A stretch of DNA of 64,000 nucleotides from Rebecca billardiae RCC1528 (Eukaryota > Protista > Haptophyta): NCBI GenBank assembly GCA_965240325.2, contig OZ251229.1, positions 2,232,001 to 2,296,000 of the forward strand, given 5' to 3'. Each line of letters begins with the position of its first letter. Position 1 is the first letter of the stretch. Below, piece after piece: positions 1-9,970 of this stretch. The notes under the pieces are model-generated. The model saw nothing but the letters and a program-made list of their open reading frames with translations, ran no database searches and was not told the origin of the DNA. The position numbers were made by a program, and so were the translations under genes.

Positions 1-201
1 CGCGCGAACCCGCACTGCCTCGTGCTCTGCCACGGCGGGCCCGTGGCGCTGCCCGCCGACGCGCGCTGGGTCCTCGCCAACACGCGCGGCGTGCACGGCT
101 TCTACGGCGCGTCCTCGATGGAGCGGTTGCCGGTCGAGACCGCGATCGCCGAGTGCGTGCGCGAGTTCAAGGCCATTCAGCTGCCGCCGGACGAGGCTTG
201 A
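1..201 (+). CDS. 3' end of TIM-barrel signal transduction / PEP-hydrolase-like (Tm-1 C-terminal-like) protein, partial
   Basis: Frame 1 reads ...LVLCHGGPVALPADARWVLANTRGVHGFYGASSMERLPVETAI...EA*. CHGGP and GFYGASSMERLP are motifs characteristic of this family. Confidence 0.8.
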   Translation, partial: RANPHCLVLCHGGPVALPADARWVLANTRGVHGFYGASSMERLPVETAIAECVREFKAIQLPPDEA

Positions 202-740
202 GCCGGCGGGACTGCGTCGTGGTCCGGGCGCAGCAGCCACGGAACCTTCACGCACGCTCTGACAATGAGCGAAGCGATATGCTGCAGCGTGACAGTCACG
301 AGTCGGACATAACTTTACTAGCCCCACGCTAGTAGTCGTACCTTACTGCTTACTAATAAGGATAAGAGACGCACACCGTTAGTAGAGCTCAGGCTCGGAC
401 AAATTCTATGATTTAAAGACACAGGCACGAGGGCGCAGCTCTCCTGATTCGTCTGTAGTGGTACTGGTCGAAGCTTGCAGCAGTGGCAGTGGTGTGAGCG
501 CGTTGATGTTGGTCCCCATGGCGCATGTCGTTGTTGTCGTCGTCCGGACGTCGTCAGGCCCACCAGGAAGTGCATGGGTACGAAATCAAAGGCGAGTGAG
601 CATGTTGGCGTCGGCCAGGCCGTCCCCTACTTGGTCAGCAGCTGGTGCGGATGATGTCGTCGCCTACTTGGTCAGTGGCAGGTCATGGTGGACGATGGTG
701 TAGCCTGTTCTTGGTCAGCAGCTGGTGGATGATGTTGTGG

Positions 741-1677
741 CCGAAGTTAGTAGTAGTTGGACTCGATCGCCTGATTTGGTAGTAGTTGGACTCGCCGAAG
801 TTGGTAGTAGTTGGACTCGCCGAAGTTAGTAGTAGTTGGACTCGATCGCCTGAGTTAGTAGTAGTTGGACTCGCCGAAGTTGGTAGTAGTTGGACTCGCC
901 GAAGTTAGTAGTAGTTGGACTCGCCTGAGTTAGTAGTAGTTGGACTCGCCGAAATTGGTAGTAGTTGGATTCGCCGAAGTTAGTAGTAGTTGGACTCGCC
1001 GAAGTTAGTAGTAGTAGTTGGACTCCCCGAAGTTAGTAGTAGTTGGACTCGCCGAAGTAGTAGTTGGACTCGCCGAAGTTAGTAGTAGTTGGACTCGCCG
1101 AAGTTAGTAGTAGTTGGACTCACCGAAGTTAGTAGTAGTTGGACTCGCCGAAGTTAGTAGTAGTTGGACTCGCTGAAGTTAGTGGTAGTTGGACTCGCCG
1201 AAGTTAGTAGTAGTTGGACTCGCCGAAGTTAGTAGTAGTTGGACTCGCCGAGGTTAGTAGTAGTTGGACTCGCTGAAGTTAGTGGTAGTTGGACTCGCCG
1301 AAGTTAGTAGGAGTTGGACTCGCCGAAATTGGTATAGTAGTTGGACTCGCCGAAGTTAGTAGTAGTTGGACTCGCCGAAGTTAGTAGTAGTAGTTGGACT
1401 CCCCGAAGTTAGTAGGAGTTGGACTCGCCGAAGTAGTAGTTGGACTCGCCGAAGTTAGTAGTAGTTGGACTCGCCGAAGTTAGTAGTAGTTGGACTCGCC
1501 GAGGTTAGTAGTAGTTGGACTCGCCGAGGTTAGTAGTAGTTGGACTCGCCGAAGTTAGTAGTAGTTGGACTCGCCGAGGTTAGTAGTAGTTGGACTTGCC
1601 GAAGTTAGTAGTAGTCATGGACTCGCCGAAGTTAGTAGTAGTTGGACTCGCCGAAGTTAGTAGTAGTTGGACTCGCC
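741..1677. repeat. Tandem array of ~37 x 25-bp units (GAAGTTAGTAGTAGTTGGACTCGCC) in the retrotransposon 3' UTR
   Basis: Units are directly visible and head-to-tail, with 21/27/28/29-bp variants and no spacers. Confidence 0.97.
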
Positions 1678-1757
1678 GTCGGGGACTGGTTCCGGTACTT
1701 GTGGGGGATGGTCGTGTCTCTGCTGGGCCTGGTGGTTCTGGTTGAGCTCGTCCTCCT

Positions 1758-1780
1758 CCCCCCCCCCCCCCCCCCCCCCC
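1758..1780 (-). repeat. G23 run (element sense strand) in 3' UTR
   Basis: Run of 23 C on the + strand. Confidence 0.9.
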
Positions 1781-1856
1781 GGCGCTTGGGCAGTTCCCCC
1801 ACCCTCCCCAGCAGGGGCCTCTGGCCAGCCTGAGTTCTGCCTGCGGGCCTGTGGCC

Positions 1857-4800
1857 TCAGTGGGCCTGACCTGGCCGTGCCCTTGGGACTGTGGTCCTGT
1901 AATGGCCTCTCCAGTGAGAGATGACCCTGGTCTGTCCGAGTGCGCCCGCTGCCAGCCTGGTGGCCACTTGGGGCCAGGGTAGCACCTCAATGTGCAGCGG
2001 GTCGTGCCGGTTGTACTGGGGGGAGCCTGGGCTGTGGAAGACCTGGACCATACGAAGAGGGGCGCCGGTGTGAGGGTCTCTGGTGACCAGGACGACTGTG
2101 GTGTTCGCCCCTGCTGCCACACAGGGGAGGAGTGCATCTGCCAACGGGGTGCCAGCCTCTCGAACCGTGCCCAGGGTGGCAGCCGCTGCTGCTGCCCTCT
2201 GTGCGCTCCCATTGGGCTCGAGGTGGGCCGGCTGGGGGGCCACTGCGGCCGCCAGGACCCCCTGGTGCTGCGCACTCAGGGACAGGGCGTGCTGTACGGT
2301 GGCTTGCCTCAGTGCCTGGGCGCTCCTGGTTGCCCCTGCTGGGTCTTCGCGGGCCCCTGCGCGGGTGACGCCCAGTACCGCAAGGAACCAGCAGTTGGCA
2401 CCAGTGCCATCGACGTCAGCATCCTGCAGTTCAGCTGCTGCATAGTAGGCATTGAGGGCCTCTTGGCCAGGTTCCTGCTGGGCCAGTGGGCCAGGGGGTG
2501 GAGGGGCCCTGCTGCCGGCCGGGGGCTGGCGCGCCCCTGCTGGGCCCTCCTGGCTGCTTGATGGGGGTCGGGGGCCCTGTGTTCGGTCAGGGGAGGGTGT
2601 GAGTCTTGGGCCGCTGGCGGACGATCCCTGGGTCTGCCCATCTCTGGGGCTCGCTCCCCCTGTGAGGCGGCCGCGGCGGAGAGCTGTGAGGAAGTGCGCG
2701 AGGTCGTACCGGCGCTGGCGGCCCTCCGTCCCAGCTGTAGCTAGCTCGAGGCGCTTGTGGTGGATGTGGGTGGTGACGCTGACGATGGTAGAGTGTAAGC
2801 TTCCCACCTTGTAGCTGCCGTCCCGCCCGGCTGGCTGGCCATCCTGCTCGTCTGACTGGTCTGCATCGGCAGAGGCGCTGTTACTGTCTCCCCCGTCCCG
2901 CGCGGTCCGCCAGGGGTACTGTTTTGCGCTCTCCTGGGCGGCTGCCACTACTGCCTTGGGGATCTGGCCCGCATAGTAGTGCCGGTGGGCTGTAGCCTGC
3001 TCTGCCAGGTCTTGCCTGTCTTGCATCGGCATCCTGCCGCCAGTGCGCTTGTCAAGCATCCGGATGATGCTATGCTGTGCTATGCTCCTGGCGTCGGCGT
3101 GGGGGCAGTCACAGAAGACGTGCGTGGCAGAGTCCGGCCCAGGGGCGTCCGATCCTGCCTCGAGGCAGAACAGACAGTCGGTGCCCAGCGTGCAGCCCGG
3201 CCATTGCTGGCTATATGGGACTGCATCCAATCCTGGGTTGGCCCCCGCAGCATCTTGATTATACTCCAGCGCCCCGACGCAGCACCTGAGGACGAACTTG
3301 GTGAGGCGCTCTGGCTTGGTGAACTGGTTCCGCAGCGAGAGGGTGGATTCCTGGGTGTGTAGGGAGTCGTCCCCCATCTTGATGGCGTACTTGGCGCTCC
3401 TGCGCTGCCTCTCTGCCGCCTGTTCGGGGGACTCGTCGTTGCCAGGGGTGGGATCCAGGCGCGCCTCCAGGGCTGCTCTGCGGGCGCGCTCTATTACCAG
3501 CCTCCTGACAGGGAGGGGCCCTGACTGCAGGAGAGCCCCTGCAGTGTCCACCAGCCCATATGCTGCAGGGAGCCAGGCGTTCTTTCCTAGCCTGTGTGAT
3601 GGGTCCATGCCATCCACAGCCACTCGCTTGGCTGCCCAGTCCGCACACAGGTTGCATACAGTGCGGTCCACGTCTTCGGAGGAAGGTTCGGTGCCCACGA
3701 AGGCCCTGGTGGCTCTGCGCAGCGATGCCAGCTGGGGAGGGGGCACTGTGTAGGTGCCGCCCGACGCGTCCGGTTCCGGCTGGAGAATTTCGCGCACCAT
3801 ATCGTCCAGTGATGGTCCACCCCTTCCGCGTGAGTGGCCGCTCATTTGGGGGTAGTACATCCAGGTGGTGCCGCGAGAGCACTCGTCAATCACATGCAGG
3901 AGCCTGGACATGTGCGGGTTGTGGGCCTGATTCTTGCTCATTCTGGGCTCCCAGCCTGGGGGGCGGGTGGTATTTGGCTGGGCCGCCTGGCCCCCTGCTG
4001 CGGAGTCCAACGCTGGCCTGGCCCAGAGGAGGTGCTTGAGTGCATCGTCGCAGTCCCAGCTGACATGAATGGTGCTACCTGGTAGGCCAGCCAGGAGTTT
4101 GGTGAGGAGTGTGGCAGATGCCACCTCCGAGTTGGCTGCAGTCTGCTGCCCGTGGTATGTGGCACTTGCCAGGCGCACGCACTCCTGGTCTCGCAGCCGG
4201 CCTGCGCCACGGGCATGTACAATGTAGGCGGCCCCAGCGGCCCCTGTGGCTGTGTCTGGCTTGTACGACCCATCTACCCCTGCTGTGACGGTGGCTGCTG
4301 CCTGGGTCACGTCTGCTGGTGCAGTGGGCACATCTGCCTCATAGGCGGCCGTTCTGGCTTCCTGCAGATGGGCGGTGTACAGGAAATTTGCGGGGCTCGT
4401 GGCCAGTTTTACCGCAGTGCGGACAATGAGGCCTGCCATTGCTTCCGCAGCTCCTGCGTGGTGCTGCACAGCCGTCCACACCATGCTGCTGCCAGTGTGT
4501 GTGAGATGGCTGAGAGCTGGGGTGCCCTGTGCGTTGAGCAGGCGTTCCATGGACGTGCCATTATCGCTCAGGATGCTGCGCTCCATCAGGCTAGGCTGGC
4601 AGTCTCCCCCTGCACTTGCAGCCTGCAGCAGGGTGCCCATGGGGGTGTCGCCCAGGGCTGCGTAGTCCCGCGCGTCCCAGTCCGCTAACAGCTCCACGAG
4701 TCTCTCCTGATCAGAGGCCCTGCTAGGGATGAGGGGGGACCTGCAGGCCTCTCGCAGGGTCAGGTTGGCCAGTGTTGCGGAGCAGGCCAGCAGCCATGGC

Positions 4801-7800
4801 TCTGTGCCCCTGGGCGCGAGCGACAGGGCCGCCATTCCGCCTCTCACTGCAGGGGGCGCCAGTGTTCCGTTGGCCGGTTGTTGTCGGTGTGCCTCCAGGC
4901 AGGTCCTGGTAAGCAGGCCCACTTGTGTGGGGCTGTTGGCAGTCCGAAGGAGGGCAGCCGCTTGCACCCCGGCCTGCAGGGCGCTCGGCTCCTCCGGGCC
5001 TATCCCCATGCTGGGGGCTGGCCCACTGCCTGCTATGCGGGCAGCGGAGGGCGGGAGACCAGCTCTGCCCCACACGATGTCCATCACGATGGCGCGCATT
5101 TTGTCTGTGATGCCGTAGCGGCGCACATCGCTCGCAGCCAGGTAGTAGCCTGCCACAGAGACCACGTCATGCTGGAGGAGAGTGCCTGTGGTCACAGTGT
5201 GGCAGGCCGGGTCCCTGGCCGCTACTGCCACTTTCCAGGAGGCCGCGCGCAGCTTTGTCTCCAATTTTGCGGCGTGCTTTGACCAATCGAGGTGGAGGGT
5301 GAGGACGTATCCGAGGTACTCAAAGTGGGTGTCTGGTCCGATGGAGGGGACAGTGGCCTGCTCACCGGCTATCTCAACGCGGAGGGGGGGCAGAGGAGGC
5401 GCGCCGTGCGCCCCTCTGCCCCTTCCTTTCTTTGCGTGCACACACTTCGAGGGGTTGAGTGCCATGCAGTGAGTGCTGAGGAATAGTCCCAGTGCGCGCA
5501 CTTGGGCGGCGCTGTCCGTCTCTGACTCTGCAAGGAAAGCTATGTCGTCCATGTACCCCATCAAGATGCGCACCTTCAGGGAGTCTCCTGCGCCAGCGTC
5601 ATGCCTGGCGGCTGGAAACGAGTATCCATGGTCAGGGTGGCTGGCTGAGTAGGACGCAATGAACATGTTCATGAAGAGACAGAATTTTATGGGACTTAGC
5701 GGGCAGCCTTGCTTGCACCCACGCAGTATCGGCACTTTGTCAGTGTGGCCATAGGGGGTCCTGGTGGTGGCCACAGAGTGAGCGTCCAGTCGGTCAAGTT
5801 CATCAATTAGTTGGGCGGAGAAGCCGTGCAGGAGAAGGGCCTTCCTCAGCGACTCATGGGGCACTCTGTCAAAGGCCTTGCTTATATCACATGTAGTGAC
5901 GTGGATCTCGGCAGAACTGGCCTTGGCATGGGTCATGGCTGCCACCAGTGCCGCCACTTGGAGCTCCGGCTGCCCGTGCTTGCTCGCTGCCGCTTGTTCC
6001 GGCGAGATCAGACCCAGCTGGTCACAGATCGACTGGATGCATCTCGCCCTGTGTGCTGCCGCCAGTTTGTACACAGTGCTTTGGAGTGCCACTCCCCTAT
6101 AATTGTTCAGATCGTGAGGGTCCCCTTTGCCTTTGTAGAAGTAGGCAAGCTCTGCGTCTTTGAGGTGGGCTGGTACAGCCGCTGCGCGGAGGATTGTGTT
6201 GACGATGTTGACCAAGATGCCTTCAAAGGCTTTGTTGATCTTTATCAAGAGTTTCAACGCGCATACTTGGATCCCGTCCAAACCAGGGGCAGCGTTCGAG
6301 TCAGCTTTTGCCAGGAGGGAGCGCAGGCCTTCCAGGTCCAGCAGGGAGCTTTCCAGCGCTCGCTGGGCCGGAGTCCATCTGCTTCGGATCTCTTCCCAGA
6401 CTGCTTCATTTGTATCCTCAATGGCAGGCCCCTGCCTGCAGCTCGGCGCTGTCCCCACGTTGTTCGCCGTGTGCGCCTCTGCGTAGCGTTTGATTTTGCT
6501 TGGGTCGGAGGTAATTTTCCCACTGCCAGCGCCCAGGTCATTGAGCATCATCATCTCGAATCCAGCATGGTTTGATTTGGGGAAGAGCATTTTGCGAAAG
6601 TGGCGGGTGCATTTCCTCCGCATGTCGTCTTGGATTTTTCTCGTCCTGTCCTTGGCAAGAGTGTCCTCGTGCTCGCGCTGCAGGAGCTCGTATTCATTTT
6701 GGTGCAAGGCTTGTCGTGCTTTCAGTTCCGACAGCCACTGTGCTGTCGAGGCGGGCCCAGCCTGGTAGATGGCCTCCAGGGTGGGGAAAGGCAAGCCGAG
6801 CAGCTGGGGCATACCCTCAGGGGGGACGTTTGCTGTAGTCAGTGCCGATTCATAACTGTCCAGTGCTTTTGCCAGGCGCACCGGCTCCGCAAGTCGCCCA
6901 TGCCTGCTGTGGCTGCTGTACCTGAAGCCTGTGTGCACTTCCCCATGCTGCTCGCTAGCACCTGGGCGGATTTGCTGCAGCCTGGTGATCACTGCGACCT
7001 GGCGGCGGTACGCATTCCCCAGTTTGAAATCCCTGAGGGCATTCGGCGCGATCGCTTTGGGGGCCCGCCTGCCAGGGGCTACTGTGGTCTCCAGTGGCTG
7101 CTGGCTGGAGTCGAGTGCAGACGTGACTCTGTCAGTTGCTACGGAGGCGAGCCACTCCAGGACGGCAGGGAGGGCTTCCTCCATGTCGCTCACCACTTGT
7201 GGCGGAGCTGCAGTAATCGTCGCAACTGGGGCTGCGAACAGGTGTGCATGGGTGTGGACGTCGTCCAGCCGCCTGATGTCGCTCTCTACGGGGTCGGATA
7301 GTGCGGCTTTGAGTTCCTTGACCGTCTCTCCGTGTGCCAGGTTGATGTAGAACCTGTATGGCCTGTAGAGCTCGTGGACCACAGGCCTGGTGGCCCCCCG
7401 CAGCTTGTGCAGTGGGATTCTACCCTGGAGAAAATGGTGGGTGCTCCCGTCCCCGTTGGGGAGCGCAGGGATGCATGCGTCCTCCAGGAGAGGGTCCGAG
7501 TGCCAAAAGTGTTGCGTTAGCTCTGCCATGTTGGTGAATATGTAGTCCAGTCGGGCCAGGGTGTTGCCACTCGAGTGGGTGTATTCGGTGGCAGGGTTGA
7601 AACTGCCGGTTGGTTTCATGTTGTGAAGGTCAGTCACTGTCTCCATGGCCGCTTTGAAATCCCCTGGTCGGTGAGCGGTGAACGCGCGTGTTGTGTCGAG
7701 CCGCCTAAGTGCCTCGCCGACCTCCCAAGTGCCATTGGCGTCCCCTCCTGCAAGCCTGAGGAGATCTTGTCGGCCCGTGTGTAGCGGGGTGCCCGTGCGG

Positions 7801-8339
7801 AGGACTTCTGTTACCCATGGCAGTATAGTTGCTCTGTTGCGGTTACTGTGAGGGGGGATGTAGAAGGATGTGGCCTCCACCACAAAGCTGGTACCCCTGG
7901 CGGTGGTGAAGACCAGGCGCCCCTGGAGCATGTATCCGGCAGTGTCCTGGCCGCCTTCAGTGCCGCTGCGGGTCACCTCCAGCCTGGAGAGAGGCAGCCT
8001 GCCATCCTTCCGCACTGCTATTGCCACTCCTTTGCCTGAGCACGAGTTGGGGGGCATTGGGTCGTGGTAGGTCGTATAGCCACTAAGGATGTCCTGAGTG
8101 GCTTTGTCTCTAGTGAGCGCGGTCTCTTGGAGCAGAACAATGTCCCAGCGCTTGGTGTCCAGGATGCTCTGCAGTCTTGCCCTGCGTGTCAAGCCTGCCA
8201 TGCCCCCTACGTTCCCACAGGCGATTGTGAGCGAACGTTCCTCAGCCCTGTTGCCTGAGCCCCTCGCCTGTGGCCTTCCCGCTGCAGCCTGCTCACTTGT
8301 CTGCCTGGCAGTGCCAGCCTGGCGATGCCCCTGAATCAT
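1857..8339 (-). CDS. Retrotransposon ORF2: APE endonuclease - reverse transcriptase - RNase H - CCHC-type Zn finger - OTU-like cysteine protease (2160 aa)
   Basis: APE: GNVGG, DIVLLQET, GGDANG, RLDYIF. RT: APGLDG, NYRGVALQ, DISKAFD, QGCPLSP, YMDD, FEYLG. RNase H: VDGS, NSEVA, WDC, SGHS, NLCADWAAK. Zn finger: CLFC..HVFCDC. OTU-like: VDGTGANCWFLAV...GHYR. Confidence 0.93.
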   Translation of the reverse strand: MIQGHRQAGTARQTSEQAAAGRPQARGSGNRAEERSLTIACGNVGGMAGLTRRARLQSILDTKRWDIVLLQETALTRDKATQDILSGYTTYHDPMPPNSCSGKGVAIAVRKDGRLPLSRLEVTRSGTEGGQDTAGYMLQGRLVFTTARGTSFVVEATSFYIPPHSNRNRATILPWVTEVLRTGTPLHTGRQDLLRLAGGDANGTWEVGEALRRLDTTRAFTAHRPGDFKAAMETVTDLHNMKPTGSFNPATEYTHSSGNTLARLDYIFTNMAELTQHFWHSDPLLEDACIPALPNGDGSTHHFLQGRIPLHKLRGATRPVVHELYRPYRFYINLAHGETVKELKAALSDPVESDIRRLDDVHTHAHLFAAPVATITAAPPQVVSDMEEALPAVLEWLASVATDRVTSALDSSQQPLETTVAPGRRAPKAIAPNALRDFKLGNAYRRQVAVITRLQQIRPGASEQHGEVHTGFRYSSHSRHGRLAEPVRLAKALDSYESALTTANVPPEGMPQLLGLPFPTLEAIYQAGPASTAQWLSELKARQALHQNEYELLQREHEDTLAKDRTRKIQDDMRRKCTRHFRKMLFPKSNHAGFEMMMLNDLGAGSGKITSDPSKIKRYAEAHTANNVGTAPSCRQGPAIEDTNEAVWEEIRSRWTPAQRALESSLLDLEGLRSLLAKADSNAAPGLDGIQVCALKLLIKINKAFEGILVNIVNTILRAAAVPAHLKDAELAYFYKGKGDPHDLNNYRGVALQSTVYKLAAAHRARCIQSICDQLGLISPEQAAASKHGQPELQVAALVAAMTHAKASSAEIHVTTCDISKAFDRVPHESLRKALLLHGFSAQLIDELDRLDAHSVATTRTPYGHTDKVPILRGCKQGCPLSPIKFCLFMNMFIASYSASHPDHGYSFPAARHDAGAGDSLKVRILMGYMDDIAFLAESETDSAAQVRALGLFLSTHCMALNPSKCVHAKKGRGRGAHGAPPLPPLRVEIAGEQATVPSIGPDTHFEYLGYVLTLHLDWSKHAAKLETKLRAASWKVAVAARDPACHTVTTGTLLQHDVVSVAGYYLAASDVRRYGITDKMRAIVMDIVWGRAGLPPSAARIAGSGPAPSMGIGPEEPSALQAGVQAAALLRTANSPTQVGLLTRTCLEAHRQQPANGTLAPPAVRGGMAALSLAPRGTEPWLLACSATLANLTLREACRSPLIPSRASDQERLVELLADWDARDYAALGDTPMGTLLQAASAGGDCQPSLMERSILSDNGTSMERLLNAQGTPALSHLTHTGSSMVWTAVQHHAGAAEAMAGLIVRTAVKLATSPANFLYTAHLQEARTAAYEADVPTAPADVTQAAATVTAGVDGSYKPDTATGAAGAAYIVHARGAGRLRDQECVRLASATYHGQQTAANSEVASATLLTKLLAGLPGSTIHVSWDCDDALKHLLWARPALDSAAGGQAAQPNTTRPPGWEPRMSKNQAHNPHMSRLLHVIDECSRGTTWMYYPQMSGHSRGRGGPSLDDMVREILQPEPDASGGTYTVPPPQLASLRRATRAFVGTEPSSEDVDRTVCNLCADWAAKRVAVDGMDPSHRLGKNAWLPAAYGLVDTAGALLQSGPLPVRRLVIERARRAALEARLDPTPGNDESPEQAAERQRRSAKYAIKMGDDSLHTQESTLSLRNQFTKPERLTKFVLRCCVGALEYNQDAAGANPGLDAVPYSQQWPGCTLGTDCLFCLEAGSDAPGPDSATHVFCDCPHADARSIAQHSIIRMLDKRTGGRMPMQDRQDLAEQATAHRHYYAGQIPKAVVAAAQESAKQYPWRTARDGGDSNSASADADQSDEQDGQPAGRDGSYKVGSLHSTIVSVTTHIHHKRLELATAGTEGRQRRYDLAHFLTALRRGRLTGGASPRDGQTQGSSASGPRLTPSPDRTQGPRPPSSSQEGPAGARQPPAGSRAPPPPGPLAQQEPGQEALNAYYAAAELQDADVDGTGANCWFLAVLGVTRAGAREDPAGATRSAQALRQATVQHALSLSAQHQGVLAAAVAPQPAHLEPNGSAQRAAAAAATLGTVREAGTPLADALLPCVAAGANTTVVLVTRDPHTGAPLRMVQVFHSPGSPQYNRHDPLHIEVLPWPQVATRLAAGALGQTRVISHWRGHYRTTVPRARPGQAH

Positions 8340-9970
8340 TTTGGCACCGGTCGGGGTGTGGGCTGCTGCCGATCACTGTTGTGGTATGGGGGCTGGGCGC
8401 ACTGCGCGTCCGCGTGGCCTGGTCTGCTGGGCTGTGAGAGCACTGCTACCCTGCTGGCGGTGTGCTGCAGAAGCTTGCGCCCATAGGCCAGCACTGTACG
8501 CCTGGTTACCGGCAGTGCTGTCCGGTGGCAGGGCATAGTGCGGCGCAGTGGCACATGCCTTGCTGTTGGTGGTGCTGTGTTGCCCTTAGGCCGCTGCCTG
8601 GGCAATCTTGATGGATCGACCGATGCACCTGGTGCCGGCCGGGCTTGGGCGATGTGACGATTTCGATGCCTGCAAGTCTTCCTCCTACTCTTCCTCCTCC
8701 TACTACTAGTGCTGCCTTTTCGCAGTCGTCCGGCCCGTCGCAGATGCGCAGGGCAGGTGCGTGAACGTGCTCTGGTGCTGCACATTAGTACGAACCTGAG
8801 CGCACGGGTGTGTTTGCGGGGCTGCGTCCAGCCAGGGCAGTAGTTCCCAGCTGTCCTGGTACTGCTGGGCCGGTTCGGCACTTTCAGACAGCTGGGACCC
8901 CGGGCAGCTGCCTGCCATGTCCCGGGGGGCTTTGAGCGGTTGTTCCTGTTTACAGCGTCCTCGAGCTTCACCGCCCCGCGCGGCGCATCTTCCATCGAGC
9001 CGCCAGCGTGCTGGCCGTCTACGCGCTGCCGCTGCGCCTGCGGTTGCGCTCTCTCCTTCCCCATCTCTCGCGGCCGCACGGTCCCCGCCTGCTCGGTAGG
9101 CCCGTCGGTCGAGCCAGCCATTCCGCGGGCCAGTGCCTCGGGCGCAGGGCGTCGCGGTTGCGTCGCAGCCATCGTCGTTCTGGCGACGCCCGCGACCGGC
9201 GGTGGGTTTTTACGCCTCGCCTCCGCCCGGCCCGGCAAATCCGGCGCGCGCGCCCGGTGCTCCGGACTTTCGTCCGCGCATTTCGCCGGCCCGTCCGGGT
9301 TAGCGGTGAGCGTTTCTGGCGCAAAAGCCGCTAATGGCGCGAAACGGCCGCCCACGCGCGATTTACGCTCGCCCGGCGCGGCTAAGTCCCCGATGGGAGA
9401 GACGGCGGGGCATGTCGCGGGGGGTATGTGTGTGCGACGCACCGTGTCGTGCCGGGAGCCGCTGCGCACTAGCACCCATCGCTCTCCCTCTGCGCCTGGA
9501 AGGTCGTCCTCTGGCGGCGGGTCGGTGTCGGGCACGTGGTTGGTCTGGAGTTGCTGCTCCTGTTGGGAGGGCGCATGTGTGTTGAGGTGCGCTGTTCGCT
9601 GGGAGGGGGGGTGCTTCTGGTAATGCTGTCTCACCGCTCCTCTCTGCCGAGATCTCGTTGCCGATGTGTGCGCTTGCGCCCGAGGGCCAAGAGGTGCTGT
9701 CGAAGTGCGTTTCATGTTGCGGTAGCGGTGCTGTTCTCGTGCTTGTTTTCGCGAGAGATGCGCGCTGGGCGTGAACACCCTATTGATGCGGATTATGCGC
9801 TGCGTTTGCGTAAGTGGTGCGTTGTTTGATGCGTTCCACGCGAGGCCCCTAAGGGTCCGCTGGAGAGAGACGTCGTCGTAGAGCCTGGGGAAGGCGTGTT
9901 CCATCGTGGAGGAAGTGGGACCATGCGGGACCGGAGCTGGCAGGCGAGTAGAGTAGTAGACGTAGTTCAC
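8336..9970 (-). CDS. Retrotransposon ORF1, basic/disordered, no recognisable domain
   Basis: 544-codon ORF whose TGA overlaps the ORF2 ATG (ATGA). The true start is uncertain because the ORF call uses a non-ATG start. Confidence 0.65.
   Translation of the reverse strand: MNYVYYSTRLPAPVPHGPTSSTMEHAFPRLYDDVSLQRTLRGLAWNASNNAPLTQTQRIIRINRVFTPSAHLSRKQAREQHRYRNMKRTSTAPLGPRAQAHTSATRSRQRGAVRQHYQKHPPSQRTAHLNTHAPSQQEQQLQTNHVPDTDPPPEDDLPGAEGERWVLVRSGSRHDTVRRTHIPPATCPAVSPIGDLAAPGERKSRVGGRFAPLAAFAPETLTANPDGPAKCADESPEHRARAPDLPGRAEARRKNPPPVAGVARTTMAATQPRRPAPEALARGMAGSTDGPTEQAGTVRPREMGKERAQPQAQRQRVDGQHAGGSMEDAPRGAVKLEDAVNRNNRSKPPGTWQAAARGPSCLKVPNRPSSTRTAGNYCPGWTQPRKHTRALRFVLMCSTRARSRTCPAHLRRAGRLRKGSTSSRRRKSRRKTCRHRNRHIAQARPAPGASVDPSRLPRQRPKGNTAPPTARHVPLRRTMPCHRTALPVTRRTVLAYGRKLLQHTASRVAVLSQPSRPGHADAQCAQPPYHNSDRQQPTPRPVPK

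Follow-up and report, generated by a model that had tools for sequence, protein, structure and literature searches.

A predicted OTU-fold domain, probably a deubiquitinase, at the C-terminus of ORF2 in a LINE of the haptophyte Rebecca billardiae

The stretch of DNA analysed here, called the window throughout, comprises 64,000 nucleotides of contig OZ251229.1 (positions 2,232,001 to 2,296,000) of the haptophyte Rebecca billardiae RCC1528 (assembly GCA_965240325.2). It contains a full-length copy of a long interspersed nuclear element (LINE) that we call family A. The copy occupies window positions 397..9910, about 9.5 kb, on the minus strand, as do all parts of the element described below; its ends were set by comparison with other genomic copies. 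The second open reading frame (ORF2) is a single uninterrupted frame at 1857-8339 that encodes 2160 amino acids and a stop. The protein ends in a domain that is predicted to have the fold of an OTU cysteine protease, that recurs in other copies of the element and in relatives from other organisms, and that probably serves as a deubiquitinase.

The N-terminal part of the ORF2 protein carries an AP-endonuclease domain (APE; Exo_endo_phos, residues 43-270, window 7530..8213), recognised as Pfam PF03372 with an E-value of 7.9e-06 and 26.2 bits against a cut-off of 24.5. A reverse transcriptase follows (RT; RVT_1, residues 744-1012, window 5304..6110; Pfam PF00078, E 1.1e-20). The next region, at residues 1352-1571 (window 3627..4286), resembles RNase H in its motifs only, and no match to it was returned by Pfam, by a profile search of the Protein Data Bank (PDB) or by BLAST to protein P0004 of Haematococcus lacustris, a relative considered below. 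Its motifs DGS, D, H and N..AD...K are invariant in an alignment with two other LINE families of the same genome, B and C, and with the Pfam-verified RNase_H domain of P0004; against family B the region is 38% identical (E 4e-44). Further on, a CCHC-type zinc knuckle of the form C-x2-C-x14-H-x2-C-x-C (residues 1722-1745, window 3105..3176), identified as a sequence motif, is kept also in family B and in the metagenome contig L019, and zf-RVT clusters were the corresponding lead in the ESM Atlas. A helical segment then leads into a low-complexity linker rich in P, S, Q and G (residues ~1893-1958, window 2466..2663), the length and sequence of which differ among lineages. The predicted OTU-fold domain fills the remainder of the chain (residues 1959-2160, window 1860..2465). 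The first-pass annotation of this DNA had proposed the order APE, RT, RNase H, zinc finger and linker upstream of the tail. Pfam bears out its APE and RT, and the knuckle and the linker are in place, whereas its RNase H is left as an assignment from motifs. The motifs it had quoted from the tail all lie in one frame within the last 200 residues, namely DVDGTGANC at residues 1975-1983 (window 2391-2417), ALRQATVQH at 2009-2017, TVVLVT at 2081-2086 and GHYRTT at 2145-2150 (window 1890-1907).

Sequence searches did not place the tail in any protease family. Pfam returned none for the whole ORF2 or for the tail, and the OTU family PF02338 gave no match even at an E-value of 10 with the relatives included; phmmer and profile searches of the tail against the sequences of the PDB likewise gave no OTU match. 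The sole sequence-type lead was a weak one, a feature neighbour in the ESM Atlas with OTU in 19% of its members. We therefore turn to predicted structure, where the result was uniform. An AlphaFold2 model of the tail, built on a four-sequence alignment, reached a mean pLDDT of 80.2 and a pTM of 0.78, and ESMFold2, which used no alignment, gave the same chain a pLDDT of 83 in the complex test described below. Among the Foldseek matches to the PDB, the best 50 were all OTU domains, with weak E-values of which the best was 1.3e-3 (OTUD3). Comparison by VIA-align with 48,161 chains placed OTU-type proteases at all of ranks 1-32, with OTUD1 at Z 12.2 (145 aligned residues, rmsd 3.6), OTUD3 at 11.9 and yeast Otu2 at 11.8-11.9, and the first unrelated folds appeared at about Z 3. 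The Josephin domain of an ataxin-3-like protein (3o65) stood at rank 38 with Z 2.5. Viral OTU-like proteases also scored lower, Z 4.6 for the proteinase of turnip yellow mosaic virus (TYMV) and 2.5 for PLP2 of PRRSV, the virus of porcine reproductive and respiratory syndrome. The structural neighbours of the tail in the ESM Atlas were OTU clusters, several of them from Chlorophyta. At model residues 87-115 there is an additional helical insert, absent from the cellular OTU domains, whose loops are predicted with low confidence.

Two residues of the domain are candidates for catalysis. In the model, Cys1983 (window 2391-2393; model C34) starts a helix at 34-40, and His2146 (window 1902-1904; model H197), together with the Tyr that follows it (Y198), starts a strand at 197-203. 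As modelled, a cysteine at the start of a helix and a histidine at the start of a strand form the OTU arrangement. The ranges aligned with Otu2 (model 4..204 on chain 148..307) pair C34 with residue 178 and H197 with residue 300, as reckoned by arithmetic from the range ends and not by residue-level superposition. Cys178 and His300 are the catalytic residues of Otu2, in which Asn302 is the third (PMC10175282). The same arithmetic against OTUD1 puts C34 on residue 320, the position of the standard dead mutant C320S. Both Cys1983 and the His-Tyr pair are invariant in the two metagenome relatives introduced below, which are about 40% identical, and in family B.

The claim of the first-pass annotation that the tail has an OTU fold, and not that of Josephin or Ulp1, thus agrees with the Z of 12.2 for OTUD1 against 2.5 for Josephin, and the Cys and His that it had named are both present, conserved and at OTU positions in the AlphaFold2 model. 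The modelled Cys lies at a helix start and the modelled His at a strand start, but the canonical third residue is missing. The triad is incomplete because Arg occupies the position two residues after His. Taken together, the modelled fold and the Cys-His dyad support placing the last ~200 residues of ORF2, highly divergent as they are, in the OTU superfamily, whose members are papain-like cysteine isopeptidases; neither a complete triad nor a sequence profile supports that placement. The tail would then be another case of an enzyme-family member that can be recognised by structure prediction only.

When 1.84 billion cluster representatives were searched exhaustively with phmmer, only two relatives of the domain came up, both ~40% identical to it and both on short JGI metagenome contigs with a GC content of 59-61% (L019 and L020, from samples 3300009564 and 3300009450). 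A word-indexed search with one alignment of the domain (A1) found nothing, and a scan of metagenome loci with another (A2) gave 600 pattern matches, of which 0 were confirmed. The frame is open to the 5' contig end on both L019 and L020. In L019 the end of RNase H is followed by the CCHC knuckle, the helical segment, a variable low-complexity linker, the OTU-like domain and a stop; the shorter L020 begins within the helical segment and is then colinear with family A. Since both contigs carry the same LINE 3' module, the lineage of the element is present in at least two other unsampled organisms.

Across the three lineages (family A, L019 and L020), the Cys, the motif His-Tyr-Arg-Thr-Thr and some 50 further positions are invariant. 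The proportion of nonsynonymous differences (pN) between lineages is 0.32-0.44 in the OTU region, the same as in the zinc-knuckle region, and the synonymous proportion (pS) is 0.67-0.74, at which silent sites are saturated. In the linker pN rises to 0.42-0.54, above that of the flanking domains. By these comparisons, the OTU domain is an integral part of the element that is maintained by purifying selection.

Within the R. billardiae genome, where our search covered 72 Mb in 41 contigs, family A has at least seven copies with an intact ORF2 frame of 2170-2171 amino acids, in addition to many 5'-truncated copies. The C-terminal domain is in frame in at least 12 genomic copies and is 97-100% identical among them; the proposal that other copies retain the domain is thereby confirmed, and it extends to the two metagenome relatives. 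Because copies are intact and their C-terminal domains are 97-100% identical, family A is a young family, active now or until recently. Three of the copies that had seemed divergent, with 64-94% protein identity, proved on re-examination to be 98.5-99% identical in DNA, two of the three with small indels. Variation across 12 copies amounts to 7 nonsynonymous and 6 synonymous sites, too few to decide on selection, and one pair of family A copies gave a ratio of nonsynonymous to synonymous substitution rates (dN/dS) of 0.15, from 7 changes only. The Cys of the motif first quoted as NCW is conserved, but its Trp is private to the window copy; in 11 of 12 copies the residue is Gly. Capture of the domain as a host gene was considered and rejected, as the search of the genome found the domain in element copies only.

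A second LINE family of the genome, family B, is 55% identical to family A in its RT. Its reading frame reaches 3371 amino acids, with an N-terminal extension of 820 amino acids ahead of the APE, and it is present in at least 12 copies that are 95-100% identical (G000:C12:1140224-1150336; loci L013, L016 and L034). On the 3' side of the homologous CCHC knuckle, at a position equivalent to that in family A, it has the OTU-like motifs HGDCLLLAAMGY and DGTGHYEPV (HGDC...GHYE). AlphaFold2 failed to model this candidate domain (pLDDT 37), and its hhalign match to family A, E 0.2, is not significant; the putative OTU homology of family B is a lead only. Family C, a third LINE family with an RT 35% identical to that of family A, has no such tail.

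Compared with solved structures, the RT of family A is nearer to that of R2 (E 1.3e-09) than to human L1 ORF2p (E 1.8e-03). Its nearest named relatives are the H. lacustris proteins P0003-P0006, which are 3200-3700 amino acids long, 27-29% identical to it and arranged in the order Josephin, APE, RT and RNase H; past the CCHC knuckle they have in addition a clear restriction-like endonuclease (RLE) of the PD-(D/E)xK type (RHN...RPD...IEIK, with RPD...IEIK read in P0004). Such an architecture, RLE included, has been described for the Dualen/RandI elements (PMC8557442, PMC9977147, PMC4640811). A Josephin-like cysteine protease in Dualen/RandI LINEs goes back to Kojima and Fujiwara (2005), whom we cite through PMC8557442 and PMC9977147, and Josephin also occurs in some Penelope-like elements (PLEs) of the Chlamys group (PMC8557442, PMC9977147). 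Family A and the Dualen/RandI LINEs of green algae alike encode a single giant protein that combines APE, RT, RNase H and a CCHC knuckle with a cysteine protease of a deubiquitinase family. Theirs, however, is an N-terminal Josephin combined with an RLE, whereas family A has a C-terminal OTU fold. No Pfam match to Josephin (PF02099) was found in its ORF2, and no PD-(D/E)xK core was seen after its CCHC knuckle by eye and BLAST, without an RLE profile; likeness to P0004 in the stretch that holds its RLE was confined, by BLAST, to the knuckle. Judged from these comparisons, family A appears to fail the defining dual-endonuclease feature of Dualen; its nearest named matches, at 27-29% identity, are Dualen-type.

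The cellular proteins OTUD1, OTUD3 and Otu2 share with the tail a predicted fold over ~140-150 aligned residues, with Cys at a helix start and His in an HY motif at a strand start. The tail differs from them in its identity of only 10-17%, in the lack of a Pfam OTU match, in having Arg and not Asn or Asp as the third residue, and in being fused to a retrotransposon polyprotein where they are host genes. OTU domains joined to transposition enzymes have been reported from Ginger1 transposases, which carry either OTU, at the C-terminus, or Ulp1, and from Helitrons of animals (PMC2836005). A preprint of 2026 mentions an ORF2p of Symbiodinium necroappetens with an N-terminal OTU alongside a Haematococcus ORF2p with an N-terminal Josephin (PMC13405545). 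Like the domain of family A, these have a proposed tie to ubiquitin pathways in transposition. Ginger1 and Helitrons are DNA transposons, however, and their OTU is recognisable by Pfam, whereas that of family A sits on a LINE and is recognised by structure only; the dinoflagellate Symbiodinium has its OTU at the N-terminus, whereas in family A it comes after RT, RNase H and the zinc knuckle, at the C-terminus. The non-LTR elements NeSL and Utopia carry Ulp1-like proteases (PMC4640811) and so resemble family A in bearing a cysteine protease from the world of ubiquitin-like modifiers. They differ in that theirs has the Ulp1/SUMO-protease fold and is N-terminal, on RLE-type elements of nematodes.

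In the literature that we searched, which left most subscription journals and Repbase Reports outside, no LINE was found whose OTU sits C-terminally, behind RT, RNase H and a zinc knuckle. To that extent the architecture is undescribed, as the first-pass annotation had suggested, and it might, as also proposed there, mark a LINE lineage of its own, but the broader theme of a deubiquitinase on a LINE is already known (PMC8557442, PMC9977147, PMC13405545). We read the C-terminal OTU of family A as a new variant, rare for LINEs, within the established theme of deubiquitinase domains on transposons.

We favour the reading that the tail of family A ORF2 is an OTU domain that would most likely act as a deubiquitinase on substrates of the element or the host, and on the modelled fold and its dyad we hold this to be probable. 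Ubiquitin encoded by a polyubiquitin gene of the same genome was used for a predicted complex with the domain, which scored 0.54 against 0.01 for the best control, a result that the tool grades as weak support and that may reflect memory of solved OTU-ubiquitin complexes. At least 89% of the contacts agreed among runs, and the pLDDT of the partner was at least 87. In the calibration for microbes, 51 of 78 solved complexes came up to the mark, as did 2 of 108 mismatched pairs; of those that did so at 0.60 or less, only 5 belonged to the 78, and with harder mismatches counted (180 in all) the 4 that passed were all in this range.

Several observations weigh against the deubiquitinase reading. 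The support from the ubiquitin complex is weak, and we have counted it as a small increment only. The link of the tail to OTU proteins at the level of sequence is nil, whether by Pfam (PF02338, to E 10) or by phmmer and profile searches against the PDB. The equivalence of Cys and His to the OTU residues was worked out by range arithmetic. Two residues after His, where canonical OTUs have Asp, Asn or Glu, the tail has Arg (HYR), which is invariant in family A and in both metagenome relatives, and the Asp expected three residues ahead of Cys is absent. The window copy, finally, bears its private Gly-to-Trp change directly after Cys1983.

The invariant Arg at the third catalytic position and the missing Asp at Cys-3 would be expected of a dead OTU, a pseudo-deubiquitinase kept for ubiquitin binding or protein docking, for instance to recruit ubiquitinated chromatin or repair factors. 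That the sequence is beyond the reach of any OTU profile fits such a domain too, and so does the weak support for ubiquitin binding from the complex prediction. However, Cys and His have been strictly kept at 40% identity while most positions changed, which would be hard to explain without catalysis; indeed, it is their strict conservation that argues for catalysis. Moreover, some OTUs have their third residue elsewhere, as does A20, or act as dyads. We consider loss of activity rather unlikely, and a little less credit goes to the notion of a cis-acting protease that cleaves the polyprotein to which it belongs, perhaps at the linker, in the way of the OTU-related proteases of tymoviruses and arteriviruses, with deubiquitination secondary. 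The chain of 2160 amino acids is polyprotein-like and has a flexible linker directly before the protease; where the folded region passes into that linker there is a sequence reminiscent of the ubiquitin tail, RLTGG and then Ala (residues 1889-1893, window ~2661-2675); and viral OTU-like proteases are among the weaker structural matches (TYMV Z 4.6, PRRSV PLP2 Z 2.5). Self-processing becomes less likely because RLTGG is not conserved at the aligned position in the two metagenome relatives. Cellular deubiquitinases, besides, match the model far better than the viral processing proteases do, and we know of no LINE ORF2 protein that needs processing.

Two other explanations strike us as very improbable. 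The tail could be the Josephin-type protease of Dualen/RandI relocated to the C-terminus, given that the nearest named RT relatives are the Josephin-APE-RT-RNase H proteins of Haematococcus and that Josephin is documented in Dualen (PMC8557442, PMC9977147). At the level of predicted structure, however, a Josephin identity is rejected by its Z of 2.5 (3o65) against 12.2 for OTU; PF02099 does not match, and the Cys and His motifs (NC..., HY...) are OTU-like. Nor do we give much room to a non-functional tail, read through or captured, with OTU-like motifs arisen by chance. No sequence profile recognises the tail, and long spurious reading frames are common in GC-rich DNA, but the fold is predicted with confidence and finds only OTU matches, and the three lineages share a colinear, conserved module whose pN lies far under pS and which is intact in all copies. 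Chance motifs were rejected on the grounds that Cys, His-Tyr and other positions are invariant at 40% identity and that the fold search yields OTU only.

If the domain is indeed a deubiquitinase, we infer its catalysis, its substrate and its benefit to the element along the following lines. In the OTU domain, held past a flexible linker after the APE, RT, RNase H-like region and CCHC knuckle, Cys1983 at the N-terminus of its helix would be activated by His2146, with which the penultimate strand begins. The domain may then strip ubiquitin or a ubiquitin-like modifier from the giant protein of the element or its ribonucleoprotein, or from host factors at the ribosome or the integration site. Retrotransposition would in this way be shielded from ubiquitin-dependent destruction or restriction. 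At ~200 amino acids, the domain is a compact target for biochemistry.

A narrower version, which we think improbable, places the deubiquitinase at the ribosome in cis, where it might clear 40S proteins of ubiquitin that signals stalling, or the nascent chain of quality-control ubiquitin, and so enable full translation of an ORF of 2160 codons that is proline-rich and of low complexity. Otu2, one of the three best structural matches, deubiquitinates the 40S protein eS7 (PMC10175282), and a link to stalling for deubiquitinases fused to ORF2p has been offered as speculation in the 2026 preprint (PMC13405545). The weak point is that the best Z scores are tied within 1, and that OTUD1, OTUD3 and Otu2 are simply the smallest OTU domains, so that the likeness may lack functional meaning. 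If true, a ribosome-directed OTU would be a transposon-encoded countermeasure to ribosome quality control.

Transposons have repeatedly acquired proteases of ubiquitin and SUMO: Ulp1 in Mutator, NeSL and Utopia, OTU in Helitron and Ginger1, and Josephin in Dualen. To our knowledge, the role of such domains in the life of the transposons that carry them has yet to be demonstrated. The nearest relatives of family A have a different deubiquitinase fold at the opposite end of the protein, which points to the same biochemical activity having been gained independently, and this would in turn imply strong selection for de-ubiquitination during retrotransposition.

Outside ORF2, a candidate ORF1 of 522 amino acids runs from an ATG at 9904 (window 8336..9904). 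Its product is basic and of low complexity, and a Pfam search of it gave no match. The frame has its start 6 nt from the element's 5' end; its TGA overlaps the ATG of ORF2 as ATGA. Such an overlap is what a coupled ORF1 would show, and the 522-residue frame could be a chance ORF in GC-rich sequence. On the other side of ORF2, the proximal 3' untranslated region (UTR; window 1679..1856) contains a poly-G tract, seen as a run of C on the plus strand near 1762-1790, that varies in length among copies. It is followed, still within the 3' UTR, by a tandem array of 37 copies of a 25-bp unit (window 740..1678; TRF score 1457), which is present in all copies at variable length. The element closes with a unique terminal segment of ~340 bp (window 397..739) that is 97-98% identical to 11 other copies and shares their end point.

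Likeness of the window copy to 4 other full-length copies ceases at ~9910, which lies 1570 bp upstream of the ATG of ORF2 and was taken as the 5' end; the 3' end was put at ~397, where likeness to 11 copies ceases and the terminus reads ...AATT(N)GTCC. No clear target-site duplication of this copy was found in a search within the window. Copies of family A terminate in ...AATT(N)GTCC, and several 5' flanks (loci L022-L024) end in GGTCC(TT) directly before the element (window 397-401 and 9911-9925). The presence of GTCC at both junctions suggests a short target-site duplication, microhomology or a target preference around GTCC. Beyond the 3' end of the element, window positions 1-200 of the plus strand hold the 3' end of a coding region that terminates in ...EFKAIQLPPDEA and then a stop, presumably a host gene adjoining the LINE insertion.

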